Part shown: in pieces, positions 33,864-57,551 of the stretch | Numbering within the stretch: the stretch's first letter is position 1 | Layout of the letters: every line of letters begins with the position of its first letter | IMG/VR virus record: IMGVR_UViG_3300036766_000988 | Span: 186,001 to 250,000 of that record | Reading direction: 5' to 3' (one strand) | Length of the DNA stretch: 64,000 bases | The notes under the pieces: generated by a model | Seen by the model: only the letters and a program-made list of their open reading frames with translations | The model's database searches: none | Told to the model about the DNA's origin: nothing | Position numbers and translations under genes: made by a program

Positions 33864-34378
33864 GGCGTGCCCTCCTTCTCATCTGGGTCGTCGCGTAGGA
33901 TACGTTCCCACGCGGTCAGGATTTGGGTTCGGTCGACTTTCGGCTCCTCGACCTTGGGCTCGCGCCGACGTGTTCTACGGGTGCGGACGGGTTCTTCGCG
34001 ATACGGACCCTGGGGGGTTCCTCCAACGAAGGCCTGTCGGAGGGCCTCAGCGTTGAAGGCTCCTGTTTCGAAGCCCCCTACGGAGAGATTCTGGTGAACT
34101 TCCAGGCGTTCCGCTTCAAGCTGGAGTTCGCTGGTGGCTCGCTGCATCTCCGCGTTGGCTTGCCGGATCTCTTCCTGCGTTCGTTCGGCTCGTCCTTGTC
34201 TGGCCCTAAACTCCCTGACCCTTCGTTCGACGAGCCAGCGGAAGGCGTACTTCCACGCCTGCGCCGACCACACGATCAGAAGAAAGCCAACCGCTATCCC
34301 GAAAGCGTAGCGACCCGAGGGGCTCAACCAGCTCCACAAACCGGTGAACCAACCGGTGACATCTCCGACCGTGACCAT
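33740..34378 (-). CDS. hypothetical membrane protein
   Basis: N-terminal hydrophobic helix; GGTGTAG 8 nt upstream. Confidence 0.65.
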   Translation of the reverse strand: MVTVGDVTGWFTGLWSWLSPSGRYAFGIAVGFLLIVWSAQAWKYAFRWLVERRVREFRARQGRAERTQEEIRQANAEMQRATSELQLEAERLEVHQNLSVGGFETGAFNAEALRQAFVGGTPQGPYREEPVRTRRTRRREPKVEEPKVDRTQILTAWERILRDDPDEKEGTPCPTIKKTVQKAPQEKPLKRPPLKKTTPKPPTPGPGRTRRG

Positions 34379-34646
34379 GGCCTACCCTACACCTCCTGAG
34401 CTTTCGAGGGCTGAAGAAAAAACGCAACAACCGACCCCTCTCAGGCCCATTACCAGTAGGGGGTTCGACACACCTCCCTTCGACGCTGCGAAGTATTTTC
34501 GACTGCCGCGAAGGATTTTGGCGCTTCCTCCACATAGGAGCGCTCGAAGTTGTCCCGAGAGCCTACGACCTGTCCCGTAAAGAACGGGGTTGTCGTCTTT
34601 CTTCGCTCCGACGTGAACGAAGTGGATCACAGGGGAGCATAACCCG

Positions 34647-35033
34647 ATGGAGGATCAGATGAGAGCGTTCTACGTGAAGATCGATGAGGCTACCCAGGCG
34701 AAGACTCCAGCAGAGGCTATCGGGAAGTTGACGGAGGCCTACTCGCTCGGGCAGCCGCTCATCAAGCGGGCCCGAGCCCGGTGCGAGTTCAGGACGGTGG
34801 CGAATCTCTCGGATATCCTCCGGTGGGCCGCCTTCACTTGCGCAGCGAAGCTTGTCGGTGGCGACCGAGCCCCTTGGGCCCTTTTTCCTTACGATGGCAG
34901 CTCCTCGCCGACGCTCAGGGGAGAGTCGTCAAGCCTCGACTGGCGGTGGCGTAAGGAGCAGGAGTGGGCCGAGACGTGGCTTCCGAGTGTCCCCCTCTGG
35001 ACCCGAGGCCCTGACTCGAAGATGAGCTTATAG
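34647..35033 (+). CDS. hypothetical protein
   Basis: 128-aa ORF. Confidence 0.6.
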   Translation: MEDQMRAFYVKIDEATQAKTPAEAIGKLTEAYSLGQPLIKRARARCEFRTVANLSDILRWAAFTCAAKLVGGDRAPWALFPYDGSSSPTLRGESSSLDWRWRKEQEWAETWLPSVPLWTRGPDSKMSL

Positions 35034-35045
35034 GCCTGGAAAGCT

Positions 35046-35414
35046 ATGGAGAGTCTCACCCAGCGGGTTGTGCGTCGATTCCTGGCAGCTCAACCTCGGT
35101 TCCAAGACGTCCGCCAGATGCTGCTCGAAGGGCTCAAGCGGGAGGGGTGGGAAGTTCGCGAGGGCCTCATGGTGCCGCACGCGACCTCGCCGGATCACAA
35201 GACCCGCCTGTGGTTCAAGGCCCGTGCGGTCTACATGAATGACCTGGGCACGGATCCCCGTGACTATAAGAACACCCACAGCTTGTCATCCGACATCCGT
35301 GAGTACGTCGATCTCCGAGGGCTCTTGAACGACATCGCTATCATGCGGCGAATCCAACATGGATCCAAGCCGGACCCCGCAGGAAACCCGGGATCACCCG
35401 AATTTCGCGCCTAG
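35046..35414 (+). CDS. hypothetical protein
   Basis: 122-aa ORF. Confidence 0.65.
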   Translation: MESLTQRVVRRFLAAQPRFQDVRQMLLEGLKREGWEVREGLMVPHATSPDHKTRLWFKARAVYMNDLGTDPRDYKNTHSLSSDIREYVDLRGLLNDIAIMRRIQHGSKPDPAGNPGSPEFRA

Positions 35415-36313
35415 GTCTCGTCTTCTTCGTCCGCCTCTTCGCCGTTCTCGGCCTCTTCGGCTTCCCTTGCGGCCTTGGCGATCTCCGCCACACGGTCTGC
35501 GAACCCTTCGTGGAGATCCCAATTGATGTCTTGGGAACCCTTCCCAGGCGGGGGTCTCCAGGCTCGCCGAAGTCCATATAGCACTTGGTTGACGTGAGCG
35601 ACGTCTCCGATCTCGCGGAAGATGTTGAGCGCGGTTTCCGGTGTGATCGTTCCGTCGGTCATCCCTTGCATCAGAAGGGTGCGGTAGAAACTGAAGCTTG
35701 GTCCTGCCTCACCTGGTATGAAGATCGACGAGAAAAACGACGTCCGCTCTTGGAAGTGGTTCTCAGTTTTGAAACAGTCTCGCAGTTCCTTGGCTGGGTT
35801 CTCTACAAGATACTGCACGAGGGCTGCGGCATCCTGGTGAGCCTTTCGTCGAGACGACTCTCCCCAGAAAGGCTCGAACTTGAGCCCCAGGAGGTAGTCC
35901 CACACGTCTTCACGAATGAGCACCTGACCCACCGGTTCGAACTTTCGGTAGCCCTTTCGTTGAACCCAGCCCCGTTCGATGGGCTCGAAGAACTTCTCGT
36001 AGTCGTAGACGACCGGCAGAGGAGCTTCCGGTTTCTCGAACCGATCGTCTCGCCAGGTCATCGGACTATCCCCAAGCAGATCCTTGGTCACGTCCCAGTG
36101 GATGGGCTGCGGTTCGAAATTGAGCGTGCCTCGGTCATCGTTGTACGTCCCCCGGAACGGCAAGCAGAGCGGACTCCACAGCCCTACCGGGTAGCAGAAG
36201 CCGCTTCGTCCATCGTCGATGCTCGTGCCTGGTCTGAGCAGGAAGAGCAAGGCCTTCGTTCCTGGTGGGAGAGGAAGGCCGGAGAGCCCACAGGTTTCGT
36301 ACCAACATCCCAT
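35411..36313 (-). CDS. hypothetical protein
   Basis: 300-aa ORF, MGCWYETC start. Confidence 0.7.
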   Translation of the reverse strand: MGCWYETCGLSGLPLPPGTKALLFLLRPGTSIDDGRSGFCYPVGLWSPLCLPFRGTYNDDRGTLNFEPQPIHWDVTKDLLGDSPMTWRDDRFEKPEAPLPVVYDYEKFFEPIERGWVQRKGYRKFEPVGQVLIREDVWDYLLGLKFEPFWGESSRRKAHQDAAALVQYLVENPAKELRDCFKTENHFQERTSFFSSIFIPGEAGPSFSFYRTLLMQGMTDGTITPETALNIFREIGDVAHVNQVLYGLRRAWRPPPGKGSQDINWDLHEGFADRVAEIAKAAREAEEAENGEEADEEDET

Positions 36314-36381
36314 AGTCCAGCTCGTGTTTCAGTTCGATGCGTTGGGCGTTCGTTGGTGTAAGGCGGGTCGAGGGTCATTCG

Positions 36382-36798
36382 ATGGCAGACGACAAGCGCA
36401 AGCACGAGGGAGTCATCTACCAGGTGGGGGAGCCCGAGCGGGTCGGGAGATATCCGGTTCGCACCGAGCTAACGGTGTTGCCCGCCGCCGATGATCCGAA
36501 GGTCGGCTGGACCGTCGGGCATGTGTACTCGGGAGAAGAGGTCTTCAAAGCAGGGGCTCCCGATGTCTCCTTGACGCGGAGAGAGGATCTTCAAGAAGGC
36601 ATGGAGATCATCGTGGCTACCCTCGTCGGGGGCTATCGCATGATCGTCAAGAGAGATGACGACGGAGAACTCTACGCTGAAACTGCGAACGGGTTGACGG
36701 GGGCGTTCCTCGACTTCGATACGGATGATCGGCACTGCTGGACTTCTGCGATGGCGTACAACCGGCGTGCCCTCAAGAGCTTGGAGACGTCGGGCTAG
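36382..36798 (+). CDS. hypothetical protein
   Basis: GAGG RBS; GGTGTAA upstream. Confidence 0.6.
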   Translation: MADDKRKHEGVIYQVGEPERVGRYPVRTELTVLPAADDPKVGWTVGHVYSGEEVFKAGAPDVSLTRREDLQEGMEIIVATLVGGYRMIVKRDDDGELYAETANGLTGAFLDFDTDDRHCWTSAMAYNRRALKSLETSG

Positions 36799-38114
36799 CT
36801 GGCGAGCTTCTGTTCGATGGCGTTGAGCGCTGTCTCGATCGAAGCCACCCCGCCCTTGTCTCCGAAGACGTAGGGGACGTGATTGGTCTTACAGGCATCG
36901 GTGATCTTGTTGCTGGTCTTGTGCCCGATGAGCCCTTCGAGAAGGATGATGGCGCACACGCCGCCGGTACGAATCCGATGCGCCATTGATTCGACCGACT
37001 TCATGGAATCGCTGTCGGTCTCATGCCATTCGACCTTGACCCCGAAGCGATTTGCGCAGAGTTCGATCTTCTCGTTGACGACGAGGCCTCCGACGATGAA
37101 GAGGGGTTTCTTCTGCATCGCAGCCCGGAGCGAAGGAAGCTTCGGCCACGAGTGCAGGATCGAGGTCTTCTCGGCTTCAACCTTCGGTTTTGGGGTGGCT
37201 TTGACCGGCCCCTGCGAGGCCACGAAGGCGGTGTCGCGATCGAACTGCGCAACCTTACGACGGCCTTCCGAGGCGATCTTCTCCCACTCTCCGTAGGAGC
37301 CGAAGGCCAGGCCTTTGATGTAGTCCGAGATGCCGCTCTCGGCCTTCATGCCCCCCAAGACAGGCATGAGCTGCCCGATGCGTTCGTACAGGAAGTGATC
37401 CTCGGGCAGACGATCTTGGAGACCCCGACCTTCGGCTACCAGCGCCTGAAGCAGGGGATAGAGCCGGGTTGGATGGTTGTCTTGCACCTTGCCGCTGAGA
37501 GCTTCGATTTCAGCGACGAGTCTCTTCGCTTTCTCGACATCCGTGGAGAGAAGCTTTCGTTTTGCGGACGGCTTCACCTCCGACTTCGCGAGTAGATGGG
37601 CGAACGTCTCGGGTTTTTCTTCCGCCGCCGGTGCCGTCGTCTTGAGAGACAACGAGGTGTCCACAACATGGACGTCAACGACCGACGACGGACCCACTAA
37701 AGGGAGGACACCTCCCACGAGTTCGCATACTTCGAGCAGCGCAGTGCGAAGAGCCGTGCGACTGGTCTCTGCTCCCTCGACATCGGGCATGGGTTCTTGC
37801 CCGAGTGCGGTCAGAACCGAGTTCAAAACACGTCGTTCCGCTTCTTGTCGAGCGACCGTCTCGTACGTGTCGAGATGAGTCTTGAGCCGCGCCATCTTCT
37901 CGGCCACGGGCTTCATCTCGGTGTCGACCTTCTTGAGCGCAGCGGTCTGTATCGTGTCGGGTAACTTGGACGCGACAGGGGCAGCAGCAACCATCGGGGG
38001 CTCCTCCGTAGGTACAGGGTTGGGTTTTTTCGGGCGCGGCTTGATCGCCCAGGGCTCGACTTCACGCGCCACAGCCTTCAAATAGCCGGAGATGGACGGG
38101 CCGTAGTGGGGCAT
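36795..38114 (-). CDS. protein with C-terminal DUF2325-like domain
   Basis: LFIVGG...AIILLEGLIGH...ACK..HVPYVF..GG.ASI. Confidence 0.65.
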   Translation of the reverse strand: MPHYGPSISGYLKAVAREVEPWAIKPRPKKPNPVPTEEPPMVAAAPVASKLPDTIQTAALKKVDTEMKPVAEKMARLKTHLDTYETVARQEAERRVLNSVLTALGQEPMPDVEGAETSRTALRTALLEVCELVGGVLPLVGPSSVVDVHVVDTSLSLKTTAPAAEEKPETFAHLLAKSEVKPSAKRKLLSTDVEKAKRLVAEIEALSGKVQDNHPTRLYPLLQALVAEGRGLQDRLPEDHFLYERIGQLMPVLGGMKAESGISDYIKGLAFGSYGEWEKIASEGRRKVAQFDRDTAFVASQGPVKATPKPKVEAEKTSILHSWPKLPSLRAAMQKKPLFIVGGLVVNEKIELCANRFGVKVEWHETDSDSMKSVESMAHRIRTGGVCAIILLEGLIGHKTSNKITDACKTNHVPYVFGDKGGVASIETALNAIEQKLAS

Positions 38115-38166
38115 GTGCCTCTCTTACTGATACACCGCCCCGAACGGTGTAGCGTAGCCACGTGAC

Positions 38167-38628
38167 ATGGTGCTGACCGAGATCCGCCCTCCGCTCGACG
38201 GGCCCGGTGGGAAAGACGTGACCGAGAACGACCTCGAAGAGTGGTGGGCTGACATCCTGCCCCCACCGTTGAATCCCCCACACTACCCCGTGACGGGTCT
38301 TGTGTTCGGGCACCTGTGGATGGGTCTGCTTTACGGAGAACGTGAACTCACCGACGCGAACTACCAGCGTCAGCGAGTCGTCATCCCATCGGGATCCACG
38401 ATGGAATTTCGAGCCGAGTTTCCACAAGGCATCGCAGGGGATGTCACGGCCGCCGCTCTGTACCTACGGGAGCGAGGGGGAGAGCTTCTCTGGAAGAAGG
38501 AGTACCCTATCCTCTGTCTTTCCCCTGGGGTTCAGCTCAGCATTTCGCTGGTCCTACAAGACGTAGAGGGTGACGCAGGACAGTTCGTGGGCTTCCGAAA
38601 GATCCTCAAACTACACGGTGTTCTGTGA
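38167..38628 (+). CDS. hypothetical protein
   Basis: 153-aa ORF. Confidence 0.6.
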   Translation: MVLTEIRPPLDGPGGKDVTENDLEEWWADILPPPLNPPHYPVTGLVFGHLWMGLLYGERELTDANYQRQRVVIPSGSTMEFRAEFPQGIAGDVTAAALYLRERGGELLWKKEYPILCLSPGVQLSISLVLQDVEGDAGQFVGFRKILKLHGVL

Positions 38629-39122: not shown

Positions 39123-39752
39123 ATGAGTCTATCGGACGCGATCTCCAGTCTCAAAATCACCCTAGGGCACTGGCAGGCACCTTCGGCTTGGGATCGGGTG
39201 AAGCAGGATGAACCCCGGGATCCTGTCGAGGGTGAATTCTTACCCGCAACAGGATCCAATGCCACCCTGACGACCCTTACCATTACGACGCAAACAATCG
39301 GGTCGACGACTCTTCCCACGACCTTGTCCACGGACACGACTTCCTCCGTGACGTACATCACGGAGGCCATTGAGCGTGTCCGTTATCAGATGGATGGGTG
39401 GGCAGGAAACAACTTCGATCAGGGGACTGGGACGAGCGTTGACGGCAACCAACCCTCGGGTCCAACGACAGGTCCCACCCGAGCCCAAGGGATGCGTACC
39501 CAGTTCGATATTGCGTACGGCAGAAGTCGCACGCGAGTAGTGCCGCCCCAACAGGAGTACCCCTATGCGCGAAATGGCAAAGAACGCAAGATTCTAGCGT
39601 CCATTCGGAAGCGGCTTCCTGAGCTGATCCAGAAGTTCACGAGCATCTTCGGAGCACCTGATGGCTCTTACGAATGGAACGCTCGTTTCTTTGAGTTCGT
39701 CAATCGGGCACGAGAACGAAACGCGGCCGTTTCTCACCGTCGGGCCAGATGA
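39123..39752 (+). CDS. hypothetical protein with Thr-rich segment
   Basis: 209 aa; GGGGA RBS. Confidence 0.6.
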   Translation: MSLSDAISSLKITLGHWQAPSAWDRVKQDEPRDPVEGEFLPATGSNATLTTLTITTQTIGSTTLPTTLSTDTTSSVTYITEAIERVRYQMDGWAGNNFDQGTGTSVDGNQPSGPTTGPTRAQGMRTQFDIAYGRSRTRVVPPQQEYPYARNGKERKILASIRKRLPELIQKFTSIFGAPDGSYEWNARFFEFVNRARERNAAVSHRRAR

Positions 39753-43332: not shown

Positions 43333-43587
43333 ATGAGTGTCCTGGCTTGTGGGCGAAAGCAGTGCTCCAACATCATGTGCGAGCGGTTGATCCTTGAGGG
43401 TCAGGCGTACATCTGCCCCCCATGTTGGGAAGAGCTGTTGACGTACAAGGCAACTTGGCCCGAGACGATGTCGGCGGCCGAGGTGCGTGAACGCATCGAA
43501 GACTTCATGCACAAGAGCCCTCCAGGCACGTTCTTGCTTGTGGAGAAGGCGGACATTGACGCTGAATTTGAGCGTCTGACAGGTTAG
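43333..43587 (+). CDS. hypothetical Cys-rich protein
   Basis: GGAG RBS; YICPPC. Confidence 0.65.
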   Translation: MSVLACGRKQCSNIMCERLILEGQAYICPPCWEELLTYKATWPETMSAAEVRERIEDFMHKSPPGTFLLVEKADIDAEFERLTG

Positions 43588-43616
43588 CTGAACGAGACCC
43601 TCACCCCGAGGTTCCC

Positions 43617-43793
43617 ATGTCCTGGCCCATCTCCCGTAGCGAGCGCACGCTCATCAAGGCGTTGCTCAAGGTCGCCCGTACCGCGTTGGTCGAGGTTCAC
43701 GTGCTGGTAAAGTCCCGTACGGCCGAGAGAGACCCTGCTCAACAGGACAGCTTGGAGGAAGCGATCCGCTTGATCGATGAGCTGGTGCCGTAA
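43617..43793 (+). CDS. small hypothetical protein (58 aa, below track cut-off)
   Basis: GAGG RBS, MSWPISRSERTLIKALLK..., fills the gap. Confidence 0.55.
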   Translation: MSWPISRSERTLIKALLKVARTALVEVHVLVKSRTAERDPAQQDSLEEAIRLIDELVP

Positions 43794-43798
43794 CCTGA

Positions 43799-43824
43799 CT
43801 GAACCAGGCCTTCGGTTGACGTAG
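43799..43824 (+). promoter_or_regulatory. CTGAAC-N13-GACGTAG promoter-like motif
   Basis: Intergenic variant with identical spacing. Confidence 0.6.
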
Positions 43825-43842
43825 TGCTTGCCAAGGAACCAT

Positions 43843-44025
43843 ATGGTCAAGAAAGAGAAGATGATCCGGTTGGTGCTGACGCAGAAGCAAGCGGAGCGCC
43901 TGGGCATCGTCCGCTGTGAGTGCGGGCATCCGCCCAACAACCACTTCGATCATGACAAACGCCCGTGCGCGCACTGCAAATGCAAGGAATACCGGCAGGT
44001 CATCAAGCTCCCACCGAAGGACTAG
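43843..44025 (+). CDS. small Cys/His protein
   Basis: AAGGA RBS; CECGH...H...CAHCKC. Confidence 0.6.
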   Translation: MVKKEKMIRLVLTQKQAERLGIVRCECGHPPNNHFDHDKRPCAHCKCKEYRQVIKLPPKD

Positions 44026-44027
44026 CC

Positions 44028-44189
44028 ATGCGGGTCGGAACGAAAGCTCAAGGTCAGAACCAGAACGCGAAGCTCGTGTCGATCCGACACGGCCACGCCC
44101 CCCGACGTTCCTGCAACGCACAGGAGAAGGCGGCCGAGACGAAGGTGCGTCAGGCAGCCCGCAAGGCATGCCGGGAAGAGGATTGCTGA
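44028..44189 (+). CDS. small basic protein, paralog A
   Basis: MRVGTKAQG...KVRQAARKAC. Confidence 0.6.
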   Translation: MRVGTKAQGQNQNAKLVSIRHGHAPRRSCNAQEKAAETKVRQAARKACREEDC

Positions 44190-44347
44190 TGCAAGTCGGA
44201 CTTCGAGTTCAGGGGCCCAAGGTGCGGCACAAGATCGCCGTTCCTCGTCATCGGGTGCTCTCGCGACGATCTGCCGATGCTCTCGAACGGGCATTGGAAC
44301 GGAAGGTTCGTCGTGCAGCCCGCAAGGCGTGTCAGGAGCACGAGTGA
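44189..44347 (+). CDS. small basic protein, paralog B
   Basis: MQVGLRVQG...KVRRAARKAC. Confidence 0.6.
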   Translation: MQVGLRVQGPKVRHKIAVPRHRVLSRRSADALERALERKVRRAARKACQEHE

Positions 44348-44544
44348 TGGATCCCGAGGTCGCCAGAATCATCAACGCTTGCGGAGGGTGGCTCAAGTTC
44401 GAAGCCATCGTGCTCGAACATCGGAAGCATGGGATGGACAACGATTTCGCCGCCCGGCAGATCGTCGATGATCTCTACCGGCAAGGCCACGACTTCCAGT
44501 TCCAGCAACATCTCGTCGAAGGGATGGCTGGAAAGGTTCTGTGA
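44347..44544 (+). CDS. hypothetical protein
   Basis: TGATG overlap, AGGAG RBS. Confidence 0.6.
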   Translation: MDPEVARIINACGGWLKFEAIVLEHRKHGMDNDFAARQIVDDLYRQGHDFQFQQHLVEGMAGKVL

Positions 44545-44556
44545 TGGACTAGGCTG

Positions 44557-44582
44557 TTGAACCGTTGAGGTTCCCGGCGTAG
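44557..44582 (+). promoter_or_regulatory. TTGAAC-N13-GGCGTAG promoter-like motif
   Basis: Intergenic, exact spacing. Confidence 0.7.
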
Positions 44583-44604
44583 CACTTCAAGAGGACATCA
44601 TCCC

Positions 44605-44814
44605 GTGAACACCATCGTACAGAGTGATCGTGATGGACGACTGTTCGTCGAGGTGGACGACATCCGCTACACGGCCGATGATCTTCCGCCCGAGGGTACG
44701 GACGTCGAGGTCGAGCCCTATACGGGCATCAACGATTGTCGTTACGCCGACGTCACGTGGAGCGCCGAGACCCCGTCCGGCTACTGTGACACGACGGCCG
44801 AAGAGATCTGGTGA
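44605..44814 (+). CDS. hypothetical protein
   Basis: GAGGA RBS. Confidence 0.55.
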   Translation: MNTIVQSDRDGRLFVEVDDIRYTADDLPPEGTDVEVEPYTGINDCRYADVTWSAETPSGYCDTTAEEIW

Positions 44815-44818
44815 CCCA

Positions 44819-45052
44819 ATGGCAACTGAGCATCAATGGCACCCTGAGTCGCACCCTGACATCCCTTTCGGGCTGAACGGGGAGAAGCTCGTTGGCTGGG
44901 AGTGTCCGGCATGCACCCTCTTCGTCATGACCCAAGAGGGGACTACTCCGACGGACGCCCCTAGGATCTACGTTTCCTGTGGGTCCTTTGGCCCTACCCT
45001 CTGGCACCGTTGGCCCTGCACCCCAGACAACAAGTACCAGATCAGGGATTGA
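44819..45052 (+). CDS. hypothetical protein
   Basis: 77 aa, CPAC. Confidence 0.5.
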   Translation: MATEHQWHPESHPDIPFGLNGEKLVGWECPACTLFVMTQEGTTPTDAPRIYVSCGSFGPTLWHRWPCTPDNKYQIRD

Positions 45053-45054: not shown

Positions 45055-45795
45055 ATGAACACGGTATTCAGAGCTGGCCGCTGGGTGATCGGTAAGGTGT
45101 GGGAGAAGATCAACCTCCCGGCCATCTACCGCGAGCTGCGAGGCCTTGGACGCAAACACGGGAAGCGTTTCTTCTGGGCCGCGCTCATTTGGGAGCTGAT
45201 CGAGGACGTGCTGTTTCCGTATCTTTCGTGGCTCGCCGGGATGCCAGAGCTGATCCCTCTCTTCCTCGTGTTGCACTTCGAGCCGATCGTCTACCCGGTC
45301 TTTTTCTGGGCTTTCCGTACGTATGACCGCGCCAAAGGCCGCGAGCCGTGGGAGCCTGATCGCTCCGCGCAGTCGAGCCACTGGCGTTCCGTCGCCAAAG
45401 TCGGGGTCTACAAGATCGCTACGCTCGGATGGTTCGTCGCCATCTTCCTCGTCTGGCACGCTACGCCGAAGATGCTCGTGCTCTACGCCATCCTGATGGC
45501 GCTCTTCGGATTCATTCACGAACGGATCTGGCACGACTCCAACTACGGGATCCTTCCGAACGATCAAGTCGAAGGCCGTCGGATCTTCATGAAGGCCATG
45601 ACCTACCGCATCGTGTCGACGATGATCTTCTATCCCTTCCTTCGCGTCTCCCTCGGGGTTGTGCCCTGGAAGCTCCTGGGGCTCTGTCAGGGGGTTGGGT
45701 TGGTTCTCTACCTCGTGCTCGAATCCGTGTGGGCTCGTTCGATGTGGGGATGCTCTCCCGTACCGCAGCTCAAGGTCAAGGAAGTGCCATGCTGA
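45055..45795 (+). CDS. membrane protein with two DUF2061-like repeats
   Basis: RSVAKVGVYKI...FIHERIW and KAMTYRIVS...LVLESVW; several TM helices. Confidence 0.65.
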   Translation: MNTVFRAGRWVIGKVWEKINLPAIYRELRGLGRKHGKRFFWAALIWELIEDVLFPYLSWLAGMPELIPLFLVLHFEPIVYPVFFWAFRTYDRAKGREPWEPDRSAQSSHWRSVAKVGVYKIATLGWFVAIFLVWHATPKMLVLYAILMALFGFIHERIWHDSNYGILPNDQVEGRRIFMKAMTYRIVSTMIFYPFLRVSLGVVPWKLLGLCQGVGLVLYLVLESVWARSMWGCSPVPQLKVKEVPC

Positions 45796-45974
45796 CCGAT
45801 GCAATGAAGCGTGAGATCGTGCAGTACACCCTCACCTACTCGAAAGGTCTCGTCGAGGACGACCAGGCGTGCCCCGAGGTGGTCAAGGCGTTCTATGCGG
45901 ATGCCGTGACGAGTGGAGAGCTGGAAGAGTACGTCGAGAAGTGCAAGGAAACGCTCCTCAAGAATCTCCCGTGA
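45789..45974 (+). CDS. small hypothetical protein
   Basis: AAGGA RBS, overlaps both neighbours. Confidence 0.55.
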   Translation: MLTDAMKREIVQYTLTYSKGLVEDDQACPEVVKAFYADAVTSGELEEYVEKCKETLLKNLP

Positions 45975-47011
45975 TCCCCATGAAGATCTCTCTCGATACG
46001 ATTGGTTTCCACACGCTCAGGGACGAGCGAGCGCGAACGTGTAGCACGACATCTCCGATGTCCTTGGCGTGCTTCATCATCACGGGCCGCTGCAATTTTT
46101 CGTGTCCGTATTGTAACGGTCCCGCGTGTAATCGGGACTTCACGGTTGAGCAGGTGCGCGGTCTGTTGACGGATCTGCGAGGCCACCAGCTCCAAGCAGT
46201 CCGCTTTACGGGTGGGGAACCCACGCTTCACAAGGGCCTGCCCGAGATGGTTCGAATCGCCCGAGATCTGGGGATTTCGAAGATCGCCATCTCGACGAAC
46301 GGAGCAGCACGTCCCGAGCTGTACCGAGAGCTGGTTGCTGAAGGGGTCGACAACTTCTCAATCTCGGCCGACTGCCGAGATTTGGAACTGGCTGCCAAAC
46401 TCTCAGGTCGACCGGGGACGTGGAATCGTGTGAAGGAGAACATCAGGATGCTCTCCGGTCTCTGCTACGTGAACACCGGAACGACCATCACGGCCGAGAA
46501 CCTTGACCAGATTCCCGACACGCTCCAATTCCTCGGAGACCTTGGAGTGGCGGATATCAAGCTGTCGACGGCAACCCAGTTCCAGGGAGCGATCCCGCTG
46601 ACGTTGCTCGACAAGATCCCGCAGGCGTTGTTCGACCGCATGCCGATCCTGCGGTACCGCATCGAGCATTACCGGCAGGGACGACCTGTTCGAGGACTTG
46701 TCGAAGGCCGAGACAGCCATCATTGCTGGTGGGTACAGGACGACATCGTGTTGACCCCCGACGGCCACTATCCGTGCATCGTCTATCCCCGCGAGAAGGG
46801 ACGTCCGATCGGACCGCTCAAGACCGTCGCCGAGATGCGAGCGGCCAGGCTCACGTGGGCTCTCAGCCGAGACACCTTCGAGGATCCGATCTGCTCTCCC
46901 TATTGCATGGACATCTTCGCCGAGTGCAACAAGCGGATCGAAGATCTCCAGGGTCTCATCCCCGTCCAAGCTCTCCGCCGCAACAAAGCACGAAGTTTGA
47001 GTATCCTGTGA
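45971..47011 (+). CDS. radical SAM enzyme (MoaA-like core, Cys-rich C-terminus)
   Basis: CNFSCPYC, FTGGEP, STNG. Confidence 0.88.
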   Translation: MIPMKISLDTIGFHTLRDERARTCSTTSPMSLACFIITGRCNFSCPYCNGPACNRDFTVEQVRGLLTDLRGHQLQAVRFTGGEPTLHKGLPEMVRIARDLGISKIAISTNGAARPELYRELVAEGVDNFSISADCRDLELAAKLSGRPGTWNRVKENIRMLSGLCYVNTGTTITAENLDQIPDTLQFLGDLGVADIKLSTATQFQGAIPLTLLDKIPQALFDRMPILRYRIEHYRQGRPVRGLVEGRDSHHCWWVQDDIVLTPDGHYPCIVYPREKGRPIGPLKTVAEMRAARLTWALSRDTFEDPICSPYCMDIFAECNKRIEDLQGLIPVQALRRNKARSLSIL

Positions 47012-49767: not shown

Positions 49768-50724
49768 CTACACCGCAGGGGGCATCGCGAAGGGCCTGTA
49801 GACAGGCTTGCCGACGAGACGGGTCAGGATTGCATCGAACCTGTCATGGAGGTCCCAGGCATCTCCGTGGCGGCATGCGGGGTCTTCCACCAGACACTCT
49901 TCGAGCAGCTCCCGCACTTGGCGCGGGACTTCGGTCGGCATCTGGTTCGTGAGCGGATGTCCTCCGAGCAGAGCTACGATGCACTTGGCGAGCATGTAGA
50001 GGTCGGTTGCCGGGCTCGGGATCCTCTTTGCCGTGACCTCGGGCGGGTAGTAAAGCCCATACTCGGGCGTGATCGCTTTGATGTGCCCCGGACCTGCGGG
50101 CTCTTCTTCGAGGATGATGTGGGTTTCGTCGTCCTCGTCCATGAGGCGAGCCCATGCAGTAGGCCGTTCGGCGGCCTTTTTCACAGGCTTCGGAGCCTTC
50201 GGGTCTTCCTTGAGCAGAACAGCGTACGACCAGTCGATGATCTTCCCCCCGTGTCCGATCGGATGCACGAGGATGTGGGGCGGGGTGATGTTGCCGTGAA
50301 CGATGTTCTTCTGGTGTACCCACCCGAGGACGACGAGTGCTCGCTTAAACATCCAGGCCATGTCCCGGTAGTCGATCCCCTGCGGATACGCGCGGATCAC
50401 GTCGGCCATCGAGACGTATTCAGCCGAGCCCGTTCGAGCTTCGGTATCGACCGCCTTGGCGAGGATGTTGTACGCCAGTCCTCCGGCCATCGTCCCGCTG
50501 GCGAGAAGCTTCGAGAGATAGCGGTAGAATTTCGTGTCGCTGGCCGTTGGGGGATAGAGCCGACGGAGCATCCTGGTCTCCGTCTGTACGAGGTCGTTGT
50601 CGGCCTTGTTTGCGGCGACCTTCACGATGACCGACGCGCCTTCGTAAGTACCCTCATAGAGGTTGCAAAGGTCGCCTTTCGGCAGCTCACGGGTGATGGT
50701 GACGTTTGGGATGACGGGCGGCAT
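49768..50724 (-). CDS. Ser/Thr protein kinase-like (possibly pseudokinase)
   Basis: VIVKVA, VHGNITPPHILV, IIDWS, YYPPE, TDLYML. Confidence 0.8.
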   Translation of the reverse strand: MPPVIPNVTITRELPKGDLCNLYEGTYEGASVIVKVAANKADNDLVQTETRMLRRLYPPTASDTKFYRYLSKLLASGTMAGGLAYNILAKAVDTEARTGSAEYVSMADVIRAYPQGIDYRDMAWMFKRALVVLGWVHQKNIVHGNITPPHILVHPIGHGGKIIDWSYAVLLKEDPKAPKPVKKAAERPTAWARLMDEDDETHIILEEEPAGPGHIKAITPEYGLYYPPEVTAKRIPSPATDLYMLAKCIVALLGGHPLTNQMPTEVPRQVRELLEECLVEDPACRHGDAWDLHDRFDAILTRLVGKPVYRPFAMPPAV

Positions 50725-52014: not shown

Positions 52015-52156
52015 GTCTGAACGTACACCGGGGAGGGCATCTACGCGAAGGGTCAAGCATCCTTCGCATGTACTAGGGGAAAATTAGGATGATCCCCCCG
52101 AAGTCGGAGCGTAGAAGAACCGGGGTCTCTACATCAACCCCCACCGGAGACTGATC

Positions 52157-52453: not shown

Positions 52454-52456
52454 GGT

Positions 52457-53296: not shown

Positions 53297-53406
53297 GCGA
53301 TCTGGTTCAAACAGCTATCGCCACCGTGGCAGCCCTGGTTGTGGGCTCCTTGCTCTTCTGGTTGTGGAGGCGGAACTACGAGCGACGTCAGAAGGACTCT
53401 CAGTGA
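53293..53406 (+). CDS. small membrane protein
   Basis: 37 aa single TM; overlaps at both ends. Confidence 0.5.
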   Translation: MSDLVQTAIATVAALVVGSLLFWLWRRNYERRQKDSQ

Positions 53407-54335
53407 AGCATCCGAACCCACTCATGCTGGTCAGGATCGCGCAGGGTGACGCCTACGGGATGGCGTGCGAGTACATCAAGTTCCCGCGTGACCAAGAAGT
53501 ACACGACCAAGCGCTGCGGTTCGAGCGCTATGGACGGCACCCGATCCACAAGCTCGCCCCTGGTCAGTACACCGACGACACCCAGATGTCGGTAGCGGTC
53601 TCCGAGGTGTTGTTGGAGTTGAACGTCCCCGATCCCCTCGCGCCTGACCGCACCTGGAATCTCCGTGAAGTCGCGGACGCGATGAAGCTCAAGTTCGCTG
53701 AGGCGTTCGTTCGATGTTTCAAGCGGGACCGACGGGATGGGTACGCCAGGCACTTCCAGGCGTTCCTCGAAACTGTGAAGGATGGCCAAGACTTCATCCA
53801 ACGCATCCACCCCGATTCCGACAAGAACGGCGCCTGCATGCGAGCAGTTCCGTTGGGAATACTGCCGACCGAAGCTCAGGTGGAGTTTGCTGCTGGTGAG
53901 CAAGCTCAGCTCACGCACGACACCGAAGGCGGACGGGGCTCGGCGATGATCGTCGCCCTGATGAGTCACTTCGCTCTCTATAGCGAGGAACCGCTCTCAA
54001 AGGTGCCCGACTTCATCCGAAAGTACTTTTGCATCTCCTCTGGAGGGTTGCCCCTTTGGGATGGCAGCCCTGTGGTGGGGCCGGACGTCGGGATGAAGAC
54101 GGCACGGGCGGTTATGACCCTCTTGGCGACTCAATCCTCCCTGTTGGACATCGCCCGCACAACTATCGAGTGGGGAGGGGATACAGACAGTGTGCTTGCC
54201 ATCGCGTGGGGGATCGCCAGTGCTAGAATGCACGAAAAGCTGCCTCCGTTCTTCGACGGTGGCCTTGAGAACGGTCCGTATGGCTACAAGTTCCTCGCTG
54301 ACCTGGGGGCGAAGCTCATGAAGAGGTATCCATGA
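53403..54335 (+). CDS. ADP-ribosylglycohydrolase (DraG/ARH family)
   Basis: GDAYG, YTDDTQM, NGACMR, TH, GGDTDS. Confidence 0.9.
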   Translation: MKHPNPLMLVRIAQGDAYGMACEYIKFPRDQEVHDQALRFERYGRHPIHKLAPGQYTDDTQMSVAVSEVLLELNVPDPLAPDRTWNLREVADAMKLKFAEAFVRCFKRDRRDGYARHFQAFLETVKDGQDFIQRIHPDSDKNGACMRAVPLGILPTEAQVEFAAGEQAQLTHDTEGGRGSAMIVALMSHFALYSEEPLSKVPDFIRKYFCISSGGLPLWDGSPVVGPDVGMKTARAVMTLLATQSSLLDIARTTIEWGGDTDSVLAIAWGIASARMHEKLPPFFDGGLENGPYGYKFLADLGAKLMKRYP

Positions 54336-54592
54336 ACCAAGCCCCCGAGGATGACTCCGAAGATCTCACCGACGGCCAGATCGCTCAGGCGGTCGAAACC
54401 ACAGGCTCGAAGGATTTCGGCGAGCGTCAGGCGCGTCTGTCCTGTACTACGTGTGGAGCACGACACGGAACTCTCAGCCATGCGCTCCGTCGTCGGGCAC
54501 CCCATCTCTACTCGCGAACCGAGGCCACCTGCGAAGCAGGACACCAAGAGATGTTCGTTTTCCTCGTGGATTGGCTGAAGGGAACAAGCTGA
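54332..54592 (+). CDS. small zinc-ribbon-like protein
   Basis: CTTC...CEAGH. Confidence 0.55.
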   Translation: MNQAPEDDSEDLTDGQIAQAVETTGSKDFGERQARLSCTTCGARHGTLSHALRRRAPHLYSRTEATCEAGHQEMFVFLVDWLKGTS

Positions 54593-54948
54593 TGAGCTGC
54601 GATGAAACCCCCCGCAAGACGATGTGCGACCGCTACCAGCCGGGTGACAAGAACGTCTGGGTCGAGCGTGGAGACACCCCCGGAAGCGAAAACGCGCCTG
54701 GTATCTGCCTTCTCGACACGATGAGTCGGGAGCAGGTCATCTACTCCATCGAGCGGGATGAGGTCGCCAGGGCGGACCTCTTGAAGGTCACCACCAACCC
54801 GGATCTCATCGAGCTGGCCAACACTGTGACTCGTCTACCAACGGCCGAACTGGTGGATATGGAGCAGACGACCGGCAACCGTCCGCAAGAGGCCGCCGGG
54901 ATCCCCTTCTACGCCATCTTCCGAGGGCAACCCCCGTTCGCTCAGTGA
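54592..54948 (+). CDS. hypothetical protein
   Basis: TGATG overlap. Confidence 0.55.
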   Translation: MSCDETPRKTMCDRYQPGDKNVWVERGDTPGSENAPGICLLDTMSREQVIYSIERDEVARADLLKVTTNPDLIELANTVTRLPTAELVDMEQTTGNRPQEAAGIPFYAIFRGQPPFAQ

Positions 54949-54962
54949 GGAGATCGTGACCG

Positions 54963-55196
54963 ATGACCGCACGCATGTTCAACGCTCCGCCCGCACCGAA
55001 AGTGCAGGCGCCGAAGTCGCACACCGAGTGGACCAAGCTCATGCGCTTGGTGGTCGAGCGGGCGGAAGCCCTTCAGCATCGGCACCTTCCAGGGCTTCGA
55101 GCATCCCTGGCCAAGGGGAACGCCGAGAAACACCTCCGCACCCTCGGGATCATCAGCCAGGCCGATCTCGACCGGGAGTTCCCGCTCCCGAAGTAG
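54963..55196 (+). CDS. hypothetical protein
   Basis: GAGGAG RBS; overlaps alternative-frame ORF 54956-55492. Confidence 0.5.
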   Translation: MTARMFNAPPAPKVQAPKSHTEWTKLMRLVVERAEALQHRHLPGLRASLAKGNAEKHLRTLGIISQADLDREFPLPK

Positions 55197-55593
55197 ACCC
55201 CACCGAGGCCCTCATCGCAGCATTCGAAGCTGGCGATCCTGTGGTTGCTTTCAAGGCCGCAACCCAGCTCATCGAGGCCTACCGGAGCGTAACCTTGGAG
55301 GCCGCCAAGCTTCGGTTTCAACTCAACTTCGGAACCCCTGGGTGCAACCAATGTGACGGGCTGCATGCCGGGCCGGGGGTTTCCGCAACCTGCTTCCAGA
55401 TGAAGCAGTGCCACTACAGCAACCTCAAGGAGGGTGAAGGGAGTTCCCGGCAACTCAGGGTGCTCAAAACATTGACCGAGATCCCCAAATAGCGCTTGAC
55501 GCCCATCCCAAGTTAGTATTCTTTGGGCTCAGGGTACTCATCCGCTGGGGATAGACCAAAAACCAGACCCGGATGTAGACAGGAGAAATTGAG

Positions 55594-56601
55594 ATGACTG
55601 CGATTCAGACTTTGAAGAGTGGGCGGGCGTCCGCCTTGAAGGATGTCGAGAAGGCCCGCAAGGAGCACAAGAAGCTTCAGACCAAGACCGAGGCCATCGT
55701 CAAGCTGTTCGGCGAGTCCAAGGTGCGTCTCGCACGGGCCGAGGCTGGACTGAATGCCCTCGACGACGCCCTCAAGAACATGGAAGGCGATACCGAGAAG
55801 GCTCCCAAGGCGAAGGCCACCTCGGTGGATGCTGTGAAGATCGACGGCCGAAGCAAGGAGGCAAGGGCCGCCAAGGCTGCGGTGAAGGCCGCTGGCAAGG
55901 CTCCCAAGGCGAAGGCCACCTCGGTGGGTGCCGTGAAGATCGACGGCCGAACCAAGGAGGCAAGGGCGGCCAAGGCTGCGGTGAAGGCCGCTGGCAAGGC
56001 TCCCAAGGCGAAGGCTCCCAAGGCGAAGGCCGTCAAGGCTGCTCCGGCAAAGAAGACCCCCAAGGCTGCGAAGATCTCCGCCAAGAAGACGGGCAAGAAG
56101 GGCGTGAGTCGTCAGGCGGCGGGTCGCCGCGAGGTCGCCGAGGGCAAGCGCCCGACGATCAAGGACGCGATCGTGCAGGTGATGGGCAACAAGGTGATGT
56201 CACGTCACCAGGTCCACGACGGGCTCAAGGCGAAGGGCTGGCTCCCGCGGTCGAACGACACGCTCGGGTACGTCGGGTACCTGCTCTCCGCCACGAAGGC
56301 GAAGGACGGCGGGCACCTCTTCGAGCGCGACGAGGCGAAGGGCCGAGGCTTCTACCGCGTTCGGCAGGACTCTTTGACGAGCCCCGAGACGCCGAAGGTC
56401 GAGAAGGCCAAGAAGTCGGAGAAGGCCGAGACGGCGGCAGCGGAGCCCAAGGCGAAGCGGAAGTACACGAAGAGGGCCAAGCCCGAGGCCGTGGCTGCAC
56501 CGCCGAAGTCCGAGGTCAACGGGACGTCGAAGGAGAAGTCGGCCGACGAGATCCTGGCGGACGCGCATCTCCTCGATACCGCGGCTCCTTTCGGAGGGTG
56601 A
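55594..56601 (+). CDS. histone H1-like Lys/Ala-rich protein with winged-helix-like domain
   Basis: KAPKAKA repeats flanking PTIKDAIVQVMGNK...GWLP...YLLS...FER...RGFYRV; AGGAG RBS. Confidence 0.75.
   Translation: MTAIQTLKSGRASALKDVEKARKEHKKLQTKTEAIVKLFGESKVRLARAEAGLNALDDALKNMEGDTEKAPKAKATSVDAVKIDGRSKEARAAKAAVKAAGKAPKAKATSVGAVKIDGRTKEARAAKAAVKAAGKAPKAKAPKAKAVKAAPAKKTPKAAKISAKKTGKKGVSRQAAGRREVAEGKRPTIKDAIVQVMGNKVMSRHQVHDGLKAKGWLPRSNDTLGYVGYLLSATKAKDGGHLFERDEAKGRGFYRVRQDSLTSPETPKVEKAKKSEKAETAAAEPKAKRKYTKRAKPEAVAAPPKSEVNGTSKEKSADEILADAHLLDTAAPFGG
55798..56031 (+). repeat. 99-bp in-frame tandem repeat (two copies plus partial)
   Basis: Units start at 55798, 55897 and 55996; encode KAPKAKATSVxAVKIDGR[ST]KEARAAKAAVKAAG. 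Confidence 0.9.
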
Positions 56602-56616
56602 TCCCTCACCATGAGG

Positions 56617-56660
56617 TACGAAAGCGCCGGGAGGTAAGATTCCTCTGCGGCGCTTTCGTA
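56617..56660 (+). terminator. hairpin/terminator after H1-like gene
   Basis: 13-bp inverted repeat TACGAAAGCGCCG/CGGCGCTTTCGTA. Confidence 0.6.
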
Positions 56661-56682
56661 TGTCTGGTGTCTGATCTCTATC

Positions 56683-57030
56683 ATGAACCAACGCGCCCAA
56701 CGCACCGAGCGGGTAGCTCGACGGCTCATCAAGAGCATGGCCCGTAGGCACATTTACGAGGTGAAGTCGGCGGAAACGAACGGGGCAGCCTACGATCGGA
56801 TGCTCATGCTCGAAGCCGCCATTCTGGAAGAGTCCCGTCGCGAATGGCGCGAGACTCTCTCCCTCTGGACATCGGACTTCGATCGGCTCGCCCTTTTGCC
56901 GATTCTCGCGAAGGTGACTCCTGCGGTGTATCGTGAGTGCCGAGAGACCGGCGACGAACTCGGGCCCGTGGCAAGCCACGCGCTCAAGAACTTCTTCGAC
57001 ACGTTCGATCCTCAAGGACTGCTCACATGA
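56683..57030 (+). CDS. hypothetical protein
   Basis: 115-aa ORF. Confidence 0.6.
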   Translation: MNQRAQRTERVARRLIKSMARRHIYEVKSAETNGAAYDRMLMLEAAILEESRREWRETLSLWTSDFDRLALLPILAKVTPAVYRECRETGDELGPVASHALKNFFDTFDPQGLLT

Positions 57031-57551
57031 AGTTAGGCGACCTCGTGATGCACCTCGATCGCCATTGGATCGTGAGTCGGTACGATCCAAAGCGAACCCG
57101 AACCGCGGTGCTTCTCGCGGCTGATGGGACACAGACGGAGATTCCCCACGATCTTGATGCCATCGGCGGGGCTCAGGTCATCGCGAACCCAAGCGAGCAG
57201 TGGCCGTTCGTTGTGGTACCGCCGAAGAACGGTTATGTCATTGCAGGTATCTCGCATGCTGGGGTTGTGATCGAGCCGATTACTGGTTGGGTAGCAAGTG
57301 ATCCTACGCGTACGGGCGGCCCAGTTTTCCTCGCACCCAACCCACGGCTTCGGTACGGCGAGACGCTCCTCGTCCGTCTTCAAGGCATCAAGCGTCGGGA
57401 AATATCGACCAAGCGGGTGGACATTCCACGAGAGTTCGGGACTGTGAAGCAACGGACGGCACGTGCCGAAGCTGCACGTACGAAGCCGGAGGAAAAGGCA
57501 AACGCTTTCTCCCGCTTACTCTCGGATGACCAAATAGGGGATGACGACTGA
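57027..57551 (+). CDS. hypothetical protein
   Basis: ATGA overlap, AAGGA RBS. Confidence 0.65.
   Translation: MKLGDLVMHLDRHWIVSRYDPKRTRTAVLLAADGTQTEIPHDLDAIGGAQVIANPSEQWPFVVVPPKNGYVIAGISHAGVVIEPITGWVASDPTRTGGPVFLAPNPRLRYGETLLVRLQGIKRREISTKRVDIPREFGTVKQRTARAEAARTKPEEKANAFSRLLSDDQIGDDD

Follow-up and report, generated by a model that had tools for sequence, protein, structure and literature searches.

A short peptide tag under protein-level selection in a clade of huge bacteriophages, with possible loading into an HK97-fold head

Four unrelated proteins encoded in a stretch of an uncultivated bacteriophage genome share a short peptide motif, and this motif is a sorting tag under protein-level selection; its copies are real and are not a coincidence. 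The stretch analyzed, referred to as the window, is 64,000 nucleotides long and is part of a 252-kb huge-phage contig (G000), which is about half-complete. Related huge phages carry the tag in genome-specific forms, or dialects, and the dialect shifts proteome-wide in concert. All copies are probably read by one phage-encoded, co-evolving receptor, which is an inference, as the receptor has not been identified. Our leading reading is that the tag loads proteins into the HK97-fold head. This reading is inferred in the absence of binding data, and we put it forward in the knowledge that the balance leans slightly against it.

The four tagged proteins

The initial annotation, made from the sequence alone, claimed that the pattern [TSN]-A-[WF]-x-R-[ILV]-x-x-[DE]-[DE] is shared by four unrelated proteins, and this claim held. 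All four peptides translate as proposed at the coordinates listed here, two on the plus strand and two on the minus strand, and no similarity among the four carrier ORFs could be detected.

33740..34378, minus strand: carrier P0001, 212 aa; N-terminal hydrophobic helix, charged coiled region, tag and Lys/Pro-rich tail; membrane-anchored
33887..33916, minus strand: tag T-A-W-E-R-I-L-R-D-D in P0001, 49 residues from the C-terminus; profile score 28.3 bits
39123..39752, plus strand: carrier P0002, 209 aa; tag, Thr-rich low-complexity stretch and C-terminal domain without known function
39183..39212, plus strand: tag S-A-W-D-R-V-K-Q-D-E at residues 21-30 of P0002, near the N-terminus; profile score 23.5 bits
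49768..50796, minus strand: carrier phage Ser/Thr protein kinase, 318-342 aa depending on the start codon; phrog_3043, E 6.8e-29
50131..50160, minus strand: tag T-A-W-A-R-L-M-D-E-D within a 38-residue insertion of the kinase, directly after the I-I-D-W-S segment
57027..57551 (longer start at 56937), plus strand: carrier P0004, 174 aa from ATG; all-beta domain, helix, linker, tag and acidic tail
57501..57530, plus strand: tag N-A-F-S-R-L-L-S-D-D (Phe variant) in P0004, 11 residues before the stop

P0001 overlaps a neighbouring ORF and was therefore missed by the crude gene caller. It has no significant Pfam or PHROG family, and P0002 likewise matched no family in either collection. The kinase has, in addition to its PHROG assignment, a Pkinase match (E 9e-5) that is under the Pfam cut-off. 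The AlphaFold2 model of P0004 (mean pLDDT 85.8) shows the tag as a short helix (160-166) of low confidence, preceded by a linker that is likewise of low confidence; the domain gave no significant fold match and is not recognisable as a protease. The flexible, charged context that had been claimed for the four copies also held, given the low-pLDDT linker and tail in this model and the Pro-rich linker found upstream of the tag.

Enrichment over chance

A chance origin of the motif is excluded by the shuffled proteomes together with the matches outside the window. For the called proteome of the 252-kb genome, 0.011 matches to the exact regular expression are expected and 6 were observed; the six-frame translation of the same genome gave 7 matches, and none of 200 within-protein shuffles gave any. 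Outside the window in which the motif was defined there were 3 matches against 0.008 expected (Poisson P = 7.5e-8). G004, a related 437-kb phage, had 5 matches against 0.02 expected. No match was found in two distant relatives, nor in a control in which the DNA pattern was read backwards. A relaxed profile was used to count carriers beyond the exact expression, and it identified at least 16 in G000 and about 33 in G004. The four copies originally noted underestimated the scale, as there are dozens of carriers per genome, mostly with the tag at the C-terminus.

Anatomy of the tag and its carriers

The tag core is [ST]-x-[WFY]-[DE]-R, followed by a hydrophobic residue and then by acidic residues, so that about seven positions are specified. 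The Ser/Thr two residues ahead of the aromatic is nearly invariant, and the peptide is likely to form a short helix. Pro occupies the two positions preceding the tag in 43% and 30% of cases, compared with a background of 5.5%. The tag usually lies 6-14 residues from the C-terminus, behind Pro-rich linkers. For example, 12 of the 16 G000 carriers and most G004 carriers have it at 14 residues or fewer from the C-terminus, while four G000 copies are internal or N-terminal; the G000 tags are followed by 0-9 variable, mostly acidic residues. Tags are 6-25 times as frequent within the last 20 residues as in the protein body, and between 3 and 16% of proteins are tagged across the huge-phage clade.

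The carriers are small, fast-evolving accessory proteins and a few enzymes (the kinase, a SWIM-domain DNA ligase and a zinc-ribbon protein); in the ligase the tag is in an interdomain linker. Synonymous codons differ among the tags, including both Ser codon families, which places the selection at the protein and not the DNA level. All three stop codons are used after the tags of the far subclade. Two criteria for a short linear motif are met: 3-10 specified residues lie in a flexible or disordered region, and the peptide occurs in unrelated proteins, above chance, and is kept in orthologues.

Conservation in orthologues and tag dialects

Orthologues keep the tag while the flanks diverge. All 23 members of the P0004 family, at 31-79% identity, have the tag. 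Kinase orthologues are present in G004, G009 and G003, and the tag is in a different place in each of the three genomes G000, G004 and G009. The alignment shows that the G004 kinase is without the G000 insertion and carries its tag in a separate N-terminal insertion, and in the G009 kinase the tag is at residue 20. The G003 orthologue has an N-terminal J domain in place of the tag. A kinase orthologue was not found in the complete genome G016 by tblastn at E 0.01. The initial annotation would have been refuted if the motif occurred only as often as in shuffled proteomes or was not conserved in orthologues; its frequency is far above the shuffled expectation and the orthologues retain it, and neither refutation applies.

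The ligase orthologues of G001-G003 have no such tag in their linkers. This was first taken as non-conservation, a view that was rejected, as those genomes use another tag. The closest relative by ClpX in IMG/VR, G008, was uninformative, being a 99-kb fragment of conserved modules without carriers. Among GenBank phages no close relative was found by DNA, and polymerase identity was at most 34%. There are, however, at least 43 related records, and many metagenome contigs contain homologues of ClpX and P0004.

The G000 dialect is W-E-R-L-L. The dialect of G016, a complete 435-kb relative, is R-F-D-R, carried by 82 of 574 proteins; the G016 tags end in two hydrophobic residues, and the genome contains tandem arrays of tagged paralogues. 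Orthologues that bear the W-type tag in G000, G004 and G009 have the R-F-x-R type instead when encoded by G016. For example, the P0004 orthologues of G004, G009 and G016 each have the dialect of their own genome. In the far subclade the tag is hydrophobic-x-x-hydrophobic-M-x-S at the exact C-terminus, found in 93 of 582 proteins of G001; this could be an unrelated system. Sequence identity tracks genome relatedness for ClpX, the AAA+ protein and the capsid-like protein alike, and no co-evolving receptor was singled out. The literature was searched, and no description of such tags was found.

The further claim of the initial annotation, that the motif is an element-specific docking or sorting signal for a common partner, is supported by all the indirect tests available, and the partner itself has not been shown. 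Of the partners given there as examples, packaging is the leading reading here and clamp binding has little support.

Possible head loading through an HK97-fold protein

In the leading reading, the tag would be bound by the HK97-fold capsid protein, at its inner face or its N-terminal helical region, or else by a capsid-bound scaffold. Two AAA+ ATPases encoded beside the capsid gene might assist loading. The prohead would close around the tagged proteins, which would then travel with the DNA into the next infected cell.

Several observations favour this reading. First, the AlphaFold2 model of a 385-aa protein (pLDDT 89) has the HK97 fold. Foldseek matched it to encapsulins and phage capsid proteins with probability 1.0; the best PDB matches are encapsulins, and the viral matches are led by major capsid proteins, phage G gp27 among them. 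An Atlas feature search found nothing for this protein, and the fold emerged from the model. It is the sole HK97-fold protein identified and is present in one copy per genome in both subclades, and scanning 28 proteins of the structural module and the core against PHROG and Pfam revealed no second capsid protein. The 385-aa protein is likely to be the phage's own capsid protein and not that of a second shell, although an unrecognised second capsid is not excluded. Secondly, the protein is 34-40% identical within the near subclade, and in the far subclade only its N-terminal part is recognisable; such fast evolution would fit the turnover of dialects. Third, its gene abuts that of a Cdc48-like AAA+ protein in a conserved cluster with ClpX. 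Fourth, the head would be a more economical receptor than ClpX, because tags occur in both subclades and the far subclade is without ClpX. Fifth, none of 23 G004 carriers is in the conserved core, compared with 87 of 614 for all proteins. Lastly, two criteria for cargo loading are met: a terminal peptide behind a flexible linker is found on several unrelated carriers, and the same element encodes an HK97-fold shell protein.

There are also arguments against head loading. The 82-93 tagged proteins per genome exceed any known packaged set, one carrier is membrane-anchored, and no cleavage site is evident. The tag sequence matches neither the encapsulin Gly-Ser-Leu consensus nor the T4 N-terminal signal ending in Leu/Ile-x-Glu. 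In addition, only circumstantial evidence connects the capsid gene with the tag, because 52 proteins have one and the same presence/absence pattern among the four genomes compared. The phages are uncultivated, and the head-loading claim is an inference made without binding, virion proteomics or expression data.

A bolder form of the head-loading reading is possible. The tag would be a proteome-wide address code whose dialects co-evolve with the fast-evolving HK97-fold shell, and it would direct up to about 90 accessory proteins, as much as 16% of all genes, to the inside of the capsid or of a second shell resembling an encapsulin. The AAA+ neighbours would be possible loaders, and the cargo would be ready at injection.

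Alternative explanations

The main rival, which remains possible, is that the tag docks its carriers on the phage ClpX, acting with host ClpP, or on the neighbouring Cdc48-like ATPase. Tagged proteins, mostly early accessory proteins, would then be unfolded or degraded on schedule, and the tag would be a tether, like the adaptor-binding part of ssrA or the SspB tail, rather than the end engaged by the pore. In its favour, a bona fide ClpX is encoded in G000, G004, G009, G016 and 17 further relatives (E 3e-105 against E. coli ClpX). The phage ClpX keeps the zinc finger, the GYVG pore loop and the LGF ClpP-docking loop, and has another sequence in place of the RKH loop, which recognises the ssrA carboxylate. 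All 66 ClpX homologues compared conserve GYVG and LGF, which meets the criterion of a ClpX with intact loops. The ClpX gene contains an intein in three relatives, which we read as a hint of the importance of the gene, given the kinds of genes in which inteins settle. Of the proteins found only in the subclade that has the aromatic-acidic-Arg tag, ClpX and the 527-aa AAA+ protein belong to the best conserved. ClpX signals are typically C-terminal, the G016 tags end in two hydrophobic residues, and the J domain found instead of the tag in the G003 kinase is another chaperone-recruiting module.

Against the unfoldase, no ClpP (PF00574) match was found in G000, G001, G003 and G004, three of which are complete, although host ClpP could serve. 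The far subclade has abundant tags and no ClpX, and the correlation between ClpX and the tag amounts to a single phylogenetic split. The G000 tag ends are variable and acidic and some copies are internal or N-terminal, unlike a pore-engaged degron; one criterion of a ClpX degradation signal thus fails, as no known nonpolar or basic end is found at the extreme terminus in G000. Complex prediction of ClpX with the tag, run with two alignments, gave no answer (score 0.00) and speaks neither for nor against binding. The 527-aa protein and a 515-aa AAA+ protein of the other subclade were considered as orthologues, which was rejected for lack of specific similarity.

It is also possible that the tag docks carriers on another hub for localisation or recruitment: the volactin-family actin-like protein, a clamp-like 433-aa protein, the VWA protein, GroEL or a host protein. 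The volactin-family protein is found in both subclades at about 50% identity (PF25216, E 3.5e-73). The clamp-like protein has a weak processivity-factor match (phrog_947, E 5e-6).

6604-7905, minus strand: clamp-like 433-aa protein

The interdomain position of the ligase tag resembles the placement of a clamp-binding motif; ligases often bear such motifs. GroEL and the VWA protein are confined to the subclade in which the tag occurs, and dialect change could equally follow a change of host. However, the tag is unlike bacterial clamp-binding (Q-L-[SD]-L-F) or PIP motifs and has no Gln-anchored pattern. The DNA polymerase (phrog_17) is absent from the profile matches and so has no tag, and the majority of carriers are small and unconnected with DNA. 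No VWA protein was found in G009, whose record is 73% complete. There is no direct support for any of these hubs.

It is very unlikely that the phage Ser/Thr kinase uses the tag as its substrate or docking site, in which case the kinase's own copy would be an autophosphorylation or pseudosubstrate segment. The near-invariant Ser/Thr two residues before the aromatic could be the acceptor, and the kinase is itself tagged in flexible insertions, at three positions in three genomes. However, a helix N-cap accounts equally well for a Ser/Thr followed three positions later by an acidic residue, which is our own reading of the pattern, and the G003 kinase sits in a genome with a different tag. The kinase was rejected as receptor, as G016 is complete and has 82 tagged proteins and no kinase orthologue.

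Origins other than a tag (chance, a DNA repeat at gene ends, common ancestry, or nascent-chain translation arrest) are all but excluded: tags do lie near stop codons and some G016 carriers are tandem paralogues, but carrier bodies are unrelated, a DNA-level repeat was rejected as synonymous positions and stop codons vary, and an arrest peptide acting at termination does not fit the internal and N-terminal copies or the relocation in the kinase.

Significance

Almost all knowledge of huge phages comes from metagenomes, and the function of most of their genes is unassigned. A single tag on 3-16% of the proteins places dozens of unknown genes in one functional class, and a short peptide is directly testable by reporter fusion. 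If head loading is true, giant phages would deliver a large, rapidly changing, ready-made set of proteins, and the tag would be a natural, swappable means of enclosing foreign proteins in HK97-fold shells. If the reader is instead the phage ClpX, the tag would be the first degradation code encoded by a virus. Either way, the concerted change of dialect would be a clean natural example of motif-receptor co-evolution.

Comparison with known systems

The tag resembles clamp-binding motifs, PIP boxes and SSB tails in being short, often C-terminal and set in disordered tails; those motifs allow many proteins to converge on one hub. It differs in its consensus, in the untagged polymerase and in its small carriers without known function, and the clamp candidate is weak. 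In the ssrA/SspB/ClpX system, terminal signals are read by an AAA+ unfoldase or its zinc-finger domain, and a ClpX is conserved in these phages. However, the phage tags match no known ClpX motif, have acidic, variable ends and also occur in relatives without ClpX.

Encapsulin cargo carries C-terminal targeting peptides that are read by the inner face of an HK97-fold shell (PMC8229669). The likeness consists in a short C-terminal peptide, a flexible linker and unrelated carriers, and the genomes of the clade all encode an HK97-fold protein. However, the phage tag is unrelated to the Gly/Ser/Leu-rich consensus and is found on tens to about 90 carriers, compared with one to a few cargo proteins for encapsulins; the phage shell is probably made of the phage's own capsid protein, and no binding has been shown for the tag.

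The other comparison is with head packaging in phages. SPN3US has a C-terminal packaging signal in its prohead protease and about 50 head proteins, and T4 has a capsid targeting sequence (PMC7411985); the tail of the HK97 protease is reported to carry a packaging signal (Duda et al. 2013). AAA+ proteins of jumbo phages have been suggested to move proteins into heads (PMC7824862). In T4, HK97 and SPN3US, short terminal peptides bring unrelated proteins into the prohead, from which they are ejected with the DNA, and giant phages carry packaged proteins by the dozen. The T4 signal lies at the N-terminus and is removed by cleavage after Glu, whereas the tag described here is mostly C-terminal and has no known processing. 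Unlike the signals of all three phages, it is carried by up to 16% of genes, and its dialect shifts between lineages.

A shared peptide tag in G000

The initial annotation had placed one short peptide, [TSN]A[WF]xR[ILV]xx[DE][DE], in four proteins of the window. All four copies held as spelled, with exact translation at the following window positions:

33887-33916, minus strand, tag copy (translation)
39183-39212, plus strand, tag copy (translation)
50131-50160, minus strand, tag copy (translation)
57501-57530, plus strand, tag copy (translation)

Of the four open reading frames concerned, one encodes a 212-aa protein with a single hydrophobic helix at its N-terminus, another a 209-aa protein whose middle part is rich in Thr, the third a Ser/Thr kinase (E 7e-29 to phrog_3043) and the fourth P0004, a 174-204-aa protein of unassigned function. 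The placement claimed for the kinase copy also held; it lies within an insertion immediately after the I-I-D-W-S segment.

The source, G000, is a single contig of 252,183 bp (59.5% G+C), of which the window covers positions 186001-250000; it is a linear IMG/VR virus record that is approximately 53% complete by CheckV. Among its gene products are a family-A DNA polymerase, a ribonucleotide reductase (large subunit, window 21278-23584, minus strand), an exonuclease V/Dda-like helicase (window 16459-18744, minus strand) and further phage functions. No close relative was found among deposited phages. G000 is an uncultivated huge phage. Genes were called with a simple codon-bias caller (85-90% coverage), which missed the gene of P0001, the 212-aa membrane-anchored carrier.

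In the called proteome of G000 (399 proteins, 71 kaa), 0.011 matches to the expression are expected by composition; 6 were found in called genes and 7 in six frames. A frequency equal to that of shuffled proteins would have refuted the motif, and this refutation failed, as none of 200 within-protein shuffles matched. As the window itself supplied the expression, it is fairly tested on the remainder of G000, which holds three more exact matches against 0.008 expected (P = 7.5e-8). A DNA rendering of the motif matched seven times in G000 and not once in 870 kb of three relatives; read backwards, it had no matches. The tag's Ala, Arg and Leu are each encoded in G000 by several different codons, and thus the constraint is on the protein and not the DNA. 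The tag counts rest on expressions picked after the data had been seen; this does not apply to the searches outside the window and in the relative G004, an independent genome.

Relaxed patterns and a position matrix identified at least 16 clear carriers in G000, in 12 of which 6-13 residues separate the aromatic residue from the C-terminus. The consensus starts with Pro, any residue, Ser/Thr, Ala, Trp (or Phe/Tyr), Asp/Glu and Arg, and continues with Leu/Ile, Leu/Met, any residue, Asp/Glu and Asp/Glu before a variable acidic end. Nine carriers are grouped at 36-65 kb of G000, amid small genes without known function. Function could be assigned to three carriers: the kinase, a topoisomerase-type zinc-ribbon protein and a DNA ligase whose tag lies between domains (L-numbers denote sequence segments):

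G000 43587-44873 = L004:4587-5873, minus strand, ATP-dependent DNA ligase with N-terminal SWIM zinc finger and tag in the interdomain linker

The SWIM-ligase arrangement also occurs in G001-G003, and a small J-domain protein (G000 45730-46155 = L004:6730-7155, minus strand) adjoins the ligase gene.

Conservation and dialects

A scan of IMG/VR with the strict DNA rendering found one real relative, G004 (437,331 bp, terminal repeats, rated complete), with 96 reciprocal best hits to G000 (mean identity 43%). With the G000-derived matrix, approximately 33 carriers were detected in G004, again C-terminal in most, and none or one weak match in the 790 kb of the distant G001 (427 kb) and G003 (363 kb). 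Lack of conservation in orthologues, the other outcome that would have refuted the motif, was not observed, as the kinases, the P0004 family and several other orthologous pairs keep the tag.

The kinases of G000 and G004 are 47% identical. The tag occupies a 38-residue insertion after D-W-S in G000; the G004 kinase lacks that insertion and has another, of 20 residues and close to its N-terminus, which holds the tag. In the relative G009 the tag is at residue 20. The kinases thus keep the tag but not its place, as expected of a docking motif. The far-subclade orthologue (G003 268853-269920, plus strand) has no tag; an N-terminal J domain with an HPD motif, a chaperone-recruiting module, stands where the tag would be.

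All 23 members of the P0004 family (31-79% identity) have a C-terminal tag, in which the aromatic position is always Phe or Tyr and Ala, one Leu and one Asp are nearly invariant. The AlphaFold2 model of P0004 predicts a confident beta domain as the body and, after a low-confidence linker, the tag as a short helix (residues 160-166, pLDDT near 57).

A search for gapped residue triplets overrepresented in the final 20 residues, compared with protein bodies, recovered the Trp-type tag in G000 and G004 and showed that relatives have their own tags. In G009 (350 kb), the closest to G000, the tag reads Thr-Ala-Trp-Asp/Glu, any residue, Leu, an acidic run and a hydrophobic end residue. In G016 (435 kb, complete), 82 of 574 proteins end in Pro, any residue, Ser/Thr, Arg, Phe/Tyr, Asp/Glu, Arg, acidic residues and two hydrophobic residues; orthologues of P0004 and of two other G000 carriers have this form. 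The core common to these near-subclade dialects is Ser/Thr, any residue, aromatic, acidic, Arg. The far-subclade tag is unrelated and forms the very end of the protein (hydrophobic, two residues, Val/Ile, Met or, in G003, Gln, any residue, Ser/Thr), in 93 of 582 proteins of G001 and 24 of 455 of G003. Its Ser is encoded from either codon family, and the genes end in any of the three stop codons. Joint switching of all tags in a proteome would be expected of a single receptor common to them. Only a few genomes, and in essence a single phylogenetic split, underlie the comparison of subclades.

The carriers are small, with nothing unusual in their size, and no structural- or replication-module proteins are among them. 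The four genomes compared have 87 conserved proteins in common; none of the 23 strong G004 carriers is one of these, and only 2 have any G000 homologue. Tagged paralogues occur in tandem runs in G016:

G016 385648-402313 = L183-L184, plus strand, approximately 30 consecutive genes of 125-150 aa, apparent tandem paralogues, nearly all with G016-dialect ends

Candidate receptors

Of the G004 proteins, 52 are matched by a homologue in G000 and by none in G001 or G003. The best conserved include ClpX, a 527-aa Cdc48-like AAA+ protein, GroEL, a VWA protein and a 433-aa protein weakly matching a processivity factor. The window holds a GroEL-type chaperonin (27935-29596, minus strand) and the 433-aa protein, weakly like a polymerase processivity factor (6604-7905, minus strand). 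The kinase was rejected as receptor, being absent from the tag-rich G016.

G000 126173-127450 = L010:9173-10450, minus strand, ClpX
L186:1062-3389 and L187:1036-3378, ClpX, further coordinates
G000 129111-133328 = L010:12111-13268, L011:1745-3328, minus strand, HK97-fold gene and adjoining 527-aa AAA+ gene

The phage ClpX is full, with zinc finger, GYVG pore loop and the LGF loop for ClpP docking; its RKH loop is replaced. It was found in 21 of 39 related records, all near-subclade, and ClpP in none of four genomes searched. A Hint/LAGLIDADG intein splits the ATPase domain in three relatives (G018, G028, G039), giving genes of 775-780 aa.

In G004, the gene of the 385-aa protein directly adjoins the AAA+ gene, one boundary base being common to both frames; in the fragment G008 the two overlap slightly. 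The 385-aa product is predicted with high confidence to have the HK97 fold (pLDDT 89); the best matches of the model among solved structures are all encapsulins, and among viral proteins they are major capsid proteins, the one of phage G included. Its family profile finds exactly one copy per genome, far subclade included, where the gene adjoins DNA polymerase and only the N-terminal part can be aligned. Family searches found no other capsid protein. From the fold, the single copy and the lack of another candidate, the predicted protein is therefore probably the major capsid protein, although a second shell is not excluded.

The HK97-fold protein has an N-terminal helical region, and its ATPase neighbor is Cdc48-D2-like. 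Four small ORFs and ClpX also belong to the conserved cluster, which adjoins DNA polymerase, not tail genes. A volactin (archaeal actin-like) family protein (PF25216, E 3.5e-73; G001 L089:18942-19934) has orthologues at G004 379418-380428 and G003 138201-139223, with approximately 50% identity across both subclades and a gene within the structural region. Limited to the far subclade are:

G001 L084:13737-17204, L076:2117-3466, L086:3181-4827 and L089:12348-13802, adenylosuccinate synthetase and lyase homologues, ThyX and several Mom-family proteins

Modification or replacement of DNA bases is suggested by this set.

Discussion

The tag is real, selected, mostly C-terminal, carried on flexible linkers, found clade-wide and co-varying across proteomes. 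A common receptor co-evolving with it is inferred, without binding data.

By analogy, the tag may be a head-loading signal that a head component would read; lacking binding data, we hold this as the leading reading, though as less likely than not. First, its precedents are the strongest: the T4 targeting sequence and the C-terminal packaging signal of the protease of SPN3US, a giant phage with roughly 50 head proteins (PMC7411985), and encapsulin targeting peptides (PMC8229669). Secondly, its component is present in both subclades. Third, it fits accessory, fast-evolving, paralogue-rich carriers. Lastly, AAA+ ATPases were earlier suggested to shift proteins into jumbo-phage heads (PMC7824862), which a probable capsid gene beside two AAA+ genes fits.

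Recognition by ClpX or a Cdc48-like ATPase for unfolding or turnover is conceivable but ranks lower, being weakened by the far subclade's lack of ClpX, the acidic variable tag ends and the internal copies. Equally conceivable, and not excluded, is that another phage or host hub reads the tag. Improbable or ruled out are a kinase site, an arrest peptide, a DNA repeat (countered by the codon variety) and chance (countered by the shuffles).

We know of no other tag that marks as much as a sixth of the genes of a phage and differs in dialect between lineages, and none was found in the full-text literature searched. Terminal sorting peptides are a kind of signal already known, and this one opens a concrete experimental route to the unknown genes that huge phages carry.
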